Source: Dimorphilus gyrociliatus (lineage: Eukaryota; Animalia; Annelida). Taken from it: a DNA stretch of 64,000 bases. A program made the position numbers and the translations under genes. The stretch covers positions 248,001 to 312,000 of the forward strand of contig CAJFCJ010000031.1 in NCBI GenBank assembly GCA_904063045.1, read 5' to 3'. Numbering within the stretch: position 1 is the first letter of the stretch; every line of letters begins with the position of its first letter. This document shows, piece after piece, positions 48,718 through 51,337 of the stretch. Under the pieces are notes generated by a model. It was not told where the DNA came from and ran no database searches. It saw only the letters and a program-made list of their open reading frames with translations.

Positions 48718-49798
48718 ATGCAATCTGTGTTCGGATATGGCCGTGTGTTGGCTAGAGTCTTAACGACAGGTGTACATAATGAGATCCAACACATAGCTAA
48801 TGCTCCTTCGCCGTTTTCGAAAAAGAGCAGAGATCTGCATTTAATAACAGCCGCGTCTGGCATATCGAAATGTAACAGTGCTCTATCCTTTAATACAAAG
48901 AGGTCCTGTGGGGACGATGCTTGTTTTTTAGCTAGTCATCAACTGGGAGACGTCATAGGTTAAATTTCATTTTATCGCTCATTCAAAATAATTACGCAGT
49001 TGAAATTTTCAGGAATAGCTGATGGTGTTGGTGGTTGGCGTTCATACGGTGTGGATCCATCACTCTTTGCTGTCTCTCTAATGGAAGCCTGTGAGCGATT
49101 AGTGACGGAAGGCTCCTTTCAACCCACCCTTCCAATCCGTCTCCTTGAAGCTGCCTACGAAGAAGTGATAGAAAATAAAACACCGCTAATCGGCAGTTGT
49201 ACAGCGTGTGTGGTCTGTTTAGAACGAAATAAGAACCGTGTCCATACGGCAAACTTAGGGGATTCTGGTTACGTTGTTGTGCGACACGGGGAAGTTGTCG
49301 AAAGATCTGAAGATCAGCAACATTATTTTAATACACCTTTCCAACTATCAGTAGCCCCTCCTAATCTACGTCACTTGACACTTTCGGATTCTCCCGCTTC
49401 CGCTCGAACCTCAGTATTCGATGTACACGATGGCGACGTTATACTCGTTGCTTCAGATGGTCTTTTCGATAATCTTACAGACGAAATGATACTGCATCAC
49501 GTTAGACGGATGACAACAAAAACTTATGAAAATGACTTGAGAAATACGGCCGTATCCCTCGTAGAACATGCCCATACTTTGGCCTCCGATCCCGATTACT
49601 TATCTCCCTTTTGTCAAAGTGCCGCTAAAAGCGGATTAAATCTAAAAGGTATTTAAATATATTACGTTAATATTATTATACCTATACTAATGGTATCTAT
49701 ATATCCGATTGATTACTCTCTATTTAGGTGGAAAACCAGACGATATAACCGTTCTCTTATCAAGAGTTTCCGCAAGGTTACCAGAAACCGCTTTATAG
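48718..49798 (+). CDS. PPTC7: Protein phosphatase PTC7 homolog (PP2C family, mitochondrial), 3 exons
   Basis: MQSVFGYGRVLAR presequence; GDDACF; IADGVGGWR.YGVDPS; TANLGDSG; QQHYFNTPFQL; SDGLFDN; GGKPDDITVLLS. Confidence 0.95.
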
Positions 49799-50082
49799 TG
49801 ATGCAATTTTTGAGACTGAGAATAGGAAATTATTTTTTCGTGCGTAGAAACTGTTGCATAATGAACAAATTTAATGTCTTATATCAATCTATGTTATATA
49901 GTCTGTACATTGTTTGAATTTTTTTTTAAGCAAATGGTTTATGAACATTTATTATTAATGGAAGTGCTAACTTCTTATTATTTCTATATAAAATTGAGCA
50001 TTTTCTTGAGTTCAATAAAACACTCAATAAGATGTATTAAAGTATTGAGAGTATATTTTTACCACTTGTCGGACTTTCCAAC

Positions 50083-50599
50083 ATGGCGTTCACATCTTCT
50101 CTTTTGCCCTTGATCCTTATAGTGGTAGTTTCATCGCTACCAATTAGGAATAGTCAAAAGTCTATGTTTGACGAAGTTAAGGCTAAAGTGAAGGAAGAGA
50201 TGGCCAAGAGGAATGAAACTGTGGACGATCTCATCAGAAAGCTGTGTAAGAAACGAAATATGAAAAATTGCACTGGAGTAGACGATGGTAGCAATTCCGT
50301 TAGGATCAAAGCAACATTACGCCCTGGAAAATGTATAAAAATATGCGAAGATCTACCGAATATGTTAAAAAAAGCTTGCGAACAATCGCACGATAGACCA
50401 GTTTGCGGAAAAGTTGATGAAGTATTCGAAAACCTTGGTAACCGTCGAACAAAACATTATTAAATTTTTTAATTATTGATTTAAAACTCTTTTCTTTTTC
50501 CGAATAGAAGATATCGGCCCAGAAAAGGTTGCTGATGCTGTCTCCGAAGCGTGCTGCGAATACAAGTGCTCCCTTGCACATCTTGCCTTCTTTTGCTGA
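50083..50599 (+). CDS. Atypical insulin/relaxin-superfamily peptide precursor, 148 aa, 2 exons (50083-50437, 50508-50599)
   Basis: Signal peptide of about 18 aa; B-chain-like ICEDLPNMLKKAC; 70-nt phase-1 GT-AG intron; exon 2 ends VSEACCEYKCSLAHLAFFC*, an exact A-chain CC-x3-C-x8-C motif. Confidence 0.75.
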
Positions 50600-50803
50600 T
50601 TGAACTGCAAAACTTTCTCTGCAAAATGCCAAAATGAAAATTGATATACGTCATTGTTTTTGATTGTATCATTTTTTCCTAATTATTTATTGTTCTATCG
50701 AAATGATTTACAAATGGTCTGCTTGTGTTTATTATTCTCTTACCGACTGTAAAATATACATAACTATTAAATACAGATATGCTGTATATTCCTATCAATA
50801 TAA

Positions 50804-50807
<4 letters not shown>

Positions 50808-50867
<60 letters not shown>

Positions 50868-50878
50868 TATATATATAT
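50808..50878. repeat. (TA)n microsatellite with one interruption
   Basis: About 70 bp TA run; it generates the spurious YIYI ORFs in the track. Confidence 0.95.
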
Positions 50879-51337
50879 GTACATATGCGTATATTGGCAT
50901 ATAATATTTATATTTATATACTGTATATGCAGAAATAGTCATAATAAAGCTACATTTTTCTAAGTATTAATCTAATTTGGCCAATCGAGAAAAGTAACGT
51001 ATCAGTAGATTTTTTCAACAGACACATTAAATGGACAACGACTTATTTTTCTAAAAGATTATCTTCGCATTTTCGAAAGTTTGCCACACAGCAAAATGCT
51101 CTTCTCATCTCTTTTACCAGTTTACATTTTGCAGAGTATGCCCTGAACCAAATTTGGCCGTCCTTTGACGGATGAAAAAAGGATCTCAATTTTCTATAAC
51201 ACTATCTTTTTTGGAAGTGTAACAAGCACAGCAAATATCATATGGGCATAATCGGCCTAAAATATATGATAATCTTTACAAAATTGATTTTATAGGTGAA
51301 TAATATTCCCTACTGGAATATCGTTCAGATAACTTCA

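Follow-up and report, generated by a model that had tools for sequence, protein, structure and literature searches.

Among the described systems closest to the locus reported here, IGF-type members of the insulin family are single chains with six Cys residues and D/E domains, and the beta-type insulins of C. elegans carry an N-terminal F peptide, which provides a precedent for a domain that follows the signal peptide and precedes the B chain. Every insulin gene is interrupted in its C domain by an intron of phase 1 (Veenstra 2021, PMC8286064). The gonadulin of arthropods is insulin-related and is characterized as fast evolving, with a structure that is poorly maintained (PMC8286064). For the annelid D. 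gyrociliatus, five insulin-like peptides (ILP1-5) have been published, and all of them have 11 residues between the B-chain Cys (PMC7854359). ILP1 is of the molluscan-MIP type with 8 Cys; it reads ...CGDNLKTMLQTVC... and ends ...KCSLNEMAQYC-stop (PMC7854359). The gene described below is not among these five ILPs. Neither its N-terminus nor its A motif was found in the Supplementary Data files of the genome paper (PMC7854359), which give the ILP1-5 precursors, and an exact look-up of its 126-aa open reading frame (ORF) in a protein collection returned no record.

The locus lies in a 64-kb stretch of D. gyrociliatus DNA that was analyzed as a whole (hereafter, the window), where the ORF listing gives the 126-aa ORF at 50083-50463 of the + strand. 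A G+C content of 30-38%, short introns and the dinophilid-like relative described below fit with this species. The original prediction held that a 70-nt phase-1 intron (50438-50507) interrupts this ORF, and that its removal adds a second exon ending in a perfect A-chain pattern, CC-x3-C-x8-C. Both points stand: the intron bounds and the frames were checked in the sequence and have comparative support from a related species, and exon 2, read in frame, ends CCEYKCSLAHLAFFC-stop. The coding part of exon 1 (50083..50437, + strand) encodes the signal peptide, an N-terminal extension, a B-like segment and the start of the C domain in 355 nt, that is, 118 codons and one base, and the intron is therefore of phase 1. 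The intron itself (50438..50507, + strand) starts as GTAAC, with GT at 50438-39, and ends as ATAG, with AG at 50506-07 and the pyrimidine tract CTCTTTTCTTTTTCC ahead of it. Its length of 70 nt is typical for D. gyrociliatus, in which the median intron is 66 bp (PMC7854359). When the intron is retained, translation runs into an in-frame stop at 50461-63. The coding part of exon 2 (50508..50599, + strand), including the stop at 50597-50599, reads in frame DIGPEKVADAVSEACCEYKCSLAHLAFFC-stop. This frame is open only from position 50480, being closed approximately 30 nt upstream of the exon, and contains no ATG; therefore, exon 2 is translatable only once it is spliced to exon 1. A tandem acceptor, TAGAAG, is located at 50505-50510, and an isoform lacking one codon (E119) is possible.

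Exon 1 served as the query in a word-index protein search, in which the sole relative was P0001, at 57% identity; it is an ORF called without splicing on four Logan contigs (L001-L004) from one related dinophilid organism. When 1.84 billion representatives were searched exhaustively with a HMMER profile, this sister-species protein was again the only match, and thus known ILPs are not linked to exon 1 by any intermediate forms. Across the locus, the four contigs do not differ from one another, and they appear to be genomic, as they also retain the intron of the upstream gene. Since this upstream gene, a PP2C phosphatase gene, precedes the locus in both species, the two loci are orthologous (syntenic). 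In L001, exon 1 is also exactly 355 nt and is followed by the same donor (TTG followed by GTAA), and the intron interrupts the coding sequence at the same codon and measures 90 or 102 nt, depending on which of two in-frame acceptors 12 nt apart (3727-28 and 3739-40) is taken. Exon 2 of L001 is in frame and ends ...VCCEYSCSLAHLSLFC-stop, with the stop right behind the last Cys. All ten of the 10 Cys are kept in the relative, compared with 53% identity at the non-Cys residues (chance p ~0.002).

Substitutions between the two species were of the coding type in both exons. For exon 1 versus L001, dN was 0.30 and dS 0.85, with identities of 0.69/0.78/0.63 at the three codon positions (Fisher p 7.7e-5, synonymous versus non-synonymous). 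For exon 2, dN was again 0.30 and dS was saturated, the corresponding identities were 0.79/0.79/0.24 (Fisher p 6.5e-8), and nearly all of the changes were at the third codon position. This pattern indicates that exon 2 is a coding exon that can be reached by splicing only. The excess of synonymous change shows that both exons are under purifying selection; for the ORF, dN/dS was approximately 0.3 and no frameshift was observed at a dS of approximately 1. A neighboring PP2C exon gave a dS of 0.96 and a dN of 0.014 for the same species pair, indicating that neutral sites are near saturation, and the dN of the present gene is approximately 20 times that of this neighbor. Short of direct RNA proof, we regard it as established that the D. 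gyrociliatus locus is a real two-exon protein-coding gene, the splicing of which we infer from the comparative evidence.

The product is best explained as a secreted precursor of 148 residues, approximately 130 without the signal peptide, with ten conserved Cys. Counted through the splice, these are C55, C63, C84, C88, C99 and C108 in exon 1 and C134, C135, C139 and C148 in exon 2; the ten Cys originally predicted, four of them extra (C55, C63, C84 and C108) and one of these inside the C domain, were thus all confirmed in position and in the relative. The predicted signal peptide (aa 1-18, 50083..50136, + strand) has a hydrophobic core at residues 7-16 (LLPLILIVVV) and V-S-S ahead of the likely cleavage site, as judged from the residues there, with small residues at -3 and -1, and it is 83% identical in the relative. 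It is followed by an N-terminal extension (aa 19-80, 50137..50322, + strand), which in D. gyrociliatus contains KR at 42-43, KKR at 56-58 and the sequons N44-E-T and N62-C-T. The extension had been described as a pro-region with KR and KKR sites and two sequons. These residues are present, but MR and KKG replace KR and KKR in the relative, and only the N44-E-T sequon is conserved, together with C55 and C63. Without conserved KR and KKR sites, the extension is probably not a cleaved pro-region and probably stays part of the mature protein.

The B-chain-like segment (aa 81-101, 50323..50385, + strand) is arranged as C84-x3-C88-x10-C99. As originally reported, its C-x10-C in ICEDLPNMLKKAC lacks the invariant Gly, and the same is true of the relative. 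A B chain has 11 residues between its Cys, usually starting as C-G, and neither species shows this spacing; a one-residue deletion would be the simplest reading. The hydrophobic residues I87, L91 and L/M95 are conserved and, when mapped by eye, fall at insulin core positions. The equivalent of the C domain (aa 102-133, 50386..50551 on the + strand, split by the intron) contains the conserved C108 and is free of dibasic sites. Indeed, no KR, RR, KK or RK occurs in the C99-C134 interval of either species, in agreement with the earlier claim that dibasic sites are absent around the C domain, and a single-chain product is therefore expected. For exon 1 alone, AlphaFold gave a pLDDT of 39.7, which is unreliable, with helices at 25-42, 47-56, 91-101 (the B-like segment) and 106-116. 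Other assignments of the Cys pattern were considered and rejected. C108-G109 could be taken as the true B7-B8, but a second Cys at the right distance is absent, and the Gly of this 'VCG' is not conserved in the relative. An insect-OBP-like pattern fits the spacing partly, but a Pfam match is absent and the family is arthropod-specific, and a saposin-like or 2S-albumin-like helical bundle gave no significant match.

The A-chain signature CCEYKCSLAHLAFFC is encoded at 50552..50596 (+ strand), with the stop directly after it, and its counterpart in the relative is CCEYSCSLAHLSLFC-stop. It fits what we take to be the insulin A-chain pattern of PROSITE PS00262, C-C-{P}-{P}-x-C-[STDNEKPI]-x(3)-[LIVMFS]-x(3)-C. 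The pattern occurs a single time in the six-frame translation of the window, and the expectation per shuffled 64-kb window is 0.01 for the strict pattern and 0.05 for the Cys spacing only. By itself, the motif would have approximately ten chance occurrences in the ~74-Mb genome; what makes the locus more than chance is its conservation in a related species, not the rarity of the motif. The A motif is the best conserved segment of the protein (80% identity, versus 53% at non-Cys residues overall). When CC is aligned with A6-A7, V/L is found at A2, S at A12, L at A13 and A16 and F at A19, all conserved between the species, and, with the mapping made by eye, these agree with the known core positions of insulin. 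The sole intron is of phase 1 and lies between the B-like and A segments in both species, which is what the family rule (PMC8286064) prescribes and what was originally claimed as the classic C-domain position of insulin genes.

Searches of family and structure databases gave a less complete picture. With exon 2 alone, the sole Pfam family match was Insulin (PF00049), covering the A-chain end of the profile (positions 61-81 of 81) with an E of 0.0095 and 17.3 bits, which is below the gathering threshold of 23 bits. The relative's exon 2 gave no Insulin match even at E 10, and exon 1 and the B-like piece matched no Pfam family, giving only noise far below threshold; the RBD, Cys_rich_VLP and UBA-like matches obtained with exon 1, the B-like piece and the relative's exon 2 were rejected for this reason. 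A PDB sequence search with exon 2 alone had zero matches, as did the B-like profile, and the exon 2 profile gave nothing significant (DILP2 B chain, E 0.4; SAM synthase, E 3). The PDB matches of the exon 1 profile (a designed helical repeat, paramyxovirus F and conglutin) had non-significant E-values and were treated as noise. The ESM Atlas had no usable match for exon 1 or for the relative's exon 2. No ILP motifs were found elsewhere in the window. The designation of the product as an insulin-like peptide is thus supported in part, by its A-chain signature, intron, signal peptide and by-eye likeness to ILP1, and not by the B-like segment, which has no Pfam or PDB match and an irregular spacing.

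The gene is flanked by conserved non-coding sequence. Its 5′ flank, a putative promoter and 5′UTR (49960..50082, + strand), has a TATA-like box, TATATAAAA, at 49985-49993, approximately 98 nt upstream of the ATG, and is ~95% identical to L001, compared with a synonymous divergence of approximately 1 nearby. An AATAAA is also present in this flank at 50014-50019, and the PP2C transcript may extend at its 3′ end into the promoter/5′UTR of the gene. In the 3′UTR (50600..50790, + strand), positions 50631-50680 are identical in the relative and an ATTAAA at 50766-50771, a putative poly(A) signal, is conserved; over 50631-50790 conservation is ~90%, versus saturated third codon positions in the adjacent exon. 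The conserved block may be a post-transcriptional control element; RNA folding of it gave a z of -0.75, and the structure was not significant. The flanks are far more conserved than the coding sequence of the gene itself. A (TA)n microsatellite at 50806-50870 occupies the same place in both species, and an Rfam search of 49500-51300 gave only sub-threshold mir-297 matches on this repeat, which were rejected as low-complexity artefacts.

Immediately upstream lies the PP2C/SpoIIE-type phosphatase gene (PTC7-like, 49000-49798), whose dN of 0.014 contrasts with the 0.30 of the ILP-like gene. Its last coding exon (stop 49796-98) and approximately 55 nt of its 3′UTR form a block (49726-49852) that is 100% identical to the relative. 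Over these ~127 nt there are zero synonymous changes, compared with a synonymous divergence of approximately 0.96 in the preceding exon, which points to constraint at the nucleotide level. RNA folding of this block was not significant either (z -1.05).

Three other explanations of the locus were weighed. That there is no gene at all, and that the ORF arose by chance in the 3′ region of the PP2C gene, is scarcely credible. The ORF is unannotated, begins approximately 285 nt downstream of the PP2C stop and follows the AATAAA of the 5′ flank (50014-50019), as such a reading would have it; however, the substitution and Cys-conservation tests have effectively refuted it already, as the frame has a dN/dS of ~0.3, stays frameshift-free at a dS of ~1 and keeps 10/10 Cys, and the signal peptide and a Kozak-like ATG context are also conserved in the relative. 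Alternatively, the intron might be retained, giving a 126-residue product that ends ...FENLGNRRTKHY and leaving the A-like stretch as 3′UTR. All four contigs of the relative are indeed unspliced, though apparently genomic. Nevertheless, we consider retention very unlikely, since the substitutions in exon 2 are those of coding sequence read in precisely the frame produced by splicing. The relative also keeps the donor, the intron phase and a stop right behind the last Cys. If left unspliced, the ORFs read through into tails of 8 residues in D. gyrociliatus and 23 in the relative, which are mutually unrelated in sequence.

The main rival is a different kind of protein, namely a lineage-specific, fast-evolving, Cys-rich secreted helical protein without insulin ancestry, such as a factor of reproduction, immunity or the matrix, with the CC-x3-C-x8-C tail being convergent or its similarity fortuitous. 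Such an orphan would fit with exon 1, 80% of the protein, having no family match and no relative beyond the sister species, with the wrong B-chain spacing, with an Insulin match of 17.3 versus 23 bits that is found in one species and absent in the other, with a motif expected 0.01-0.05 times per 64 kb and hence several times per genome, and with a dN 20 times that of the neighboring gene. However, the match exceeds the Cys residues: positions A12, A13, A16 and A19 are occupied by S, L, L and an aromatic residue, the stop follows the last Cys just as it does in ILP1, and it is the A motif that is the most conserved segment. The lone intron has the phase and position of the insulin family, and a Cys-bracketed helix with L..(M)L spacing lies at the right distance upstream of the A motif. 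An unrelated orphan Cys-rich protein with a convergent tail thus seems to us improbable, if a good deal less so than retention of the intron.

We favor the reading that the gene product is a strongly derived, single-chain protein of the insulin superfamily, to which we assign a probability of roughly 0.65. Because the near-invariant B-chain spacing of the family is absent and the insulin fold is a putative one, we do not file the product as a proven family member. Under the favored reading, the C-terminal half would be a strongly derived insulin/IGF-superfamily domain consisting of a B-like helix (C88...C99), a 34-residue unexcised connecting domain and a canonical terminal A chain. By analogy with insulin, disulfides would be expected at C134-C139, C88-C135 and C99-C148. 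The remaining C55, C63, C84 and C108 would presumably form two further bridges, and C84 and C108 flank the B-like helix. These extra bridges may tie the ~60-residue N-glycosylated extension and the connecting domain to the insulin core, and the product may serve outside the cell as an IGF-like ligand made of one chain. The gene most likely arose when an ILP1-like gene was duplicated in the dinophilid lineage and then diverged rapidly (dN 0.30 versus 0.014 in the neighboring gene). More tentatively, it could represent a new structural subclass confined to dinophilids, a single-chain hormone with five disulfides in which a glycosylated, Cys-bearing N-terminal domain is covalently tied to a shortened, Gly-less C-x10-C core, perhaps serving as a signal linked to sex or reproduction or as a modulator of the canonical ILPs. 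The role of receptor antagonist put forward in the original prediction is pure speculation. D. gyrociliatus shows extreme sexual dimorphism, which is the context for a putative sex-linked signal.

The gene would raise the ILP count of a model annelid with a compact genome above the five published, and homology- and cleavage-based peptide screens miss such divergent members. It is a structurally odd candidate, so far from two closely related species. As it evolves rapidly yet strictly conserves its Cys, it is a candidate for a role in signaling specific to its lineage. If the insulin fold is true, the limits of the scaffold would be extended to ten Cys, a B helix one residue short and without Gly, and a retained N-terminal domain, which bears on how much drift the fold and its receptor-binding surfaces tolerate. 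If the fold is not insulin-like, the product is just another orphan Cys-rich secreted protein.

Comparison with known systems places the protein at some distance from each of them. No sequence, synteny or receptor evidence connects it to gonadulin, and no sequence similarity to IGF-type members was detected. The IGFs differ from it in that they have 6 Cys, their B chain is canonical, and they carry D/E domains at the C terminus instead of an N-terminal extension. The likeness to vertebrate and arthropod IGFs lies in the secreted single chain, the unexcised connecting domain and the phase-1 intron in the C domain (PMC8286064). Extra disulfides on an insulin core, as proposed here, are also a feature of the eight-Cys ILPs, namely the octinsulin and multinsulins of ambulacrarians (PMC8286064) and ILP4. 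A limited full-text search of the literature for insulin-like peptides with ten Cys returned none. Octinsulin, the multinsulins, ILP4 and the C. elegans beta-type insulins have one extra Cys pair versus the two here, and they keep C-x11-C and KR convertase sites.

The published ILPs of the same species were compared by eye (ILP1-5, Supplementary Data, PMC7854359). ILP4, which is dilp7-like, has a C-x3-C ahead of the B helix, as does the protein described here. ILP1 shares with it the signal peptide, a B helix with L..ML...C, and an A chain with CC..KCSL....(Y/F)C followed by a stop. On visual comparison, EDLPNMLKKAC looks like a version of the ILP1 stretch GDNLKTMLQTVC that has lost its Gly, and KCSLAHLAFFC-stop is similar to KCSLNEMAQYC-stop. 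In contrast, ILP1 has C-G-x10-C (11 residues between the Cys), KR/KKR around the C peptide, an extra Cys before CC and no extension, whereas the present protein has a Gly-less C-x10-C, is free of cleavage sites, and bears Cys residues both in its extension of 60 residues and, as a single one, within the C domain.
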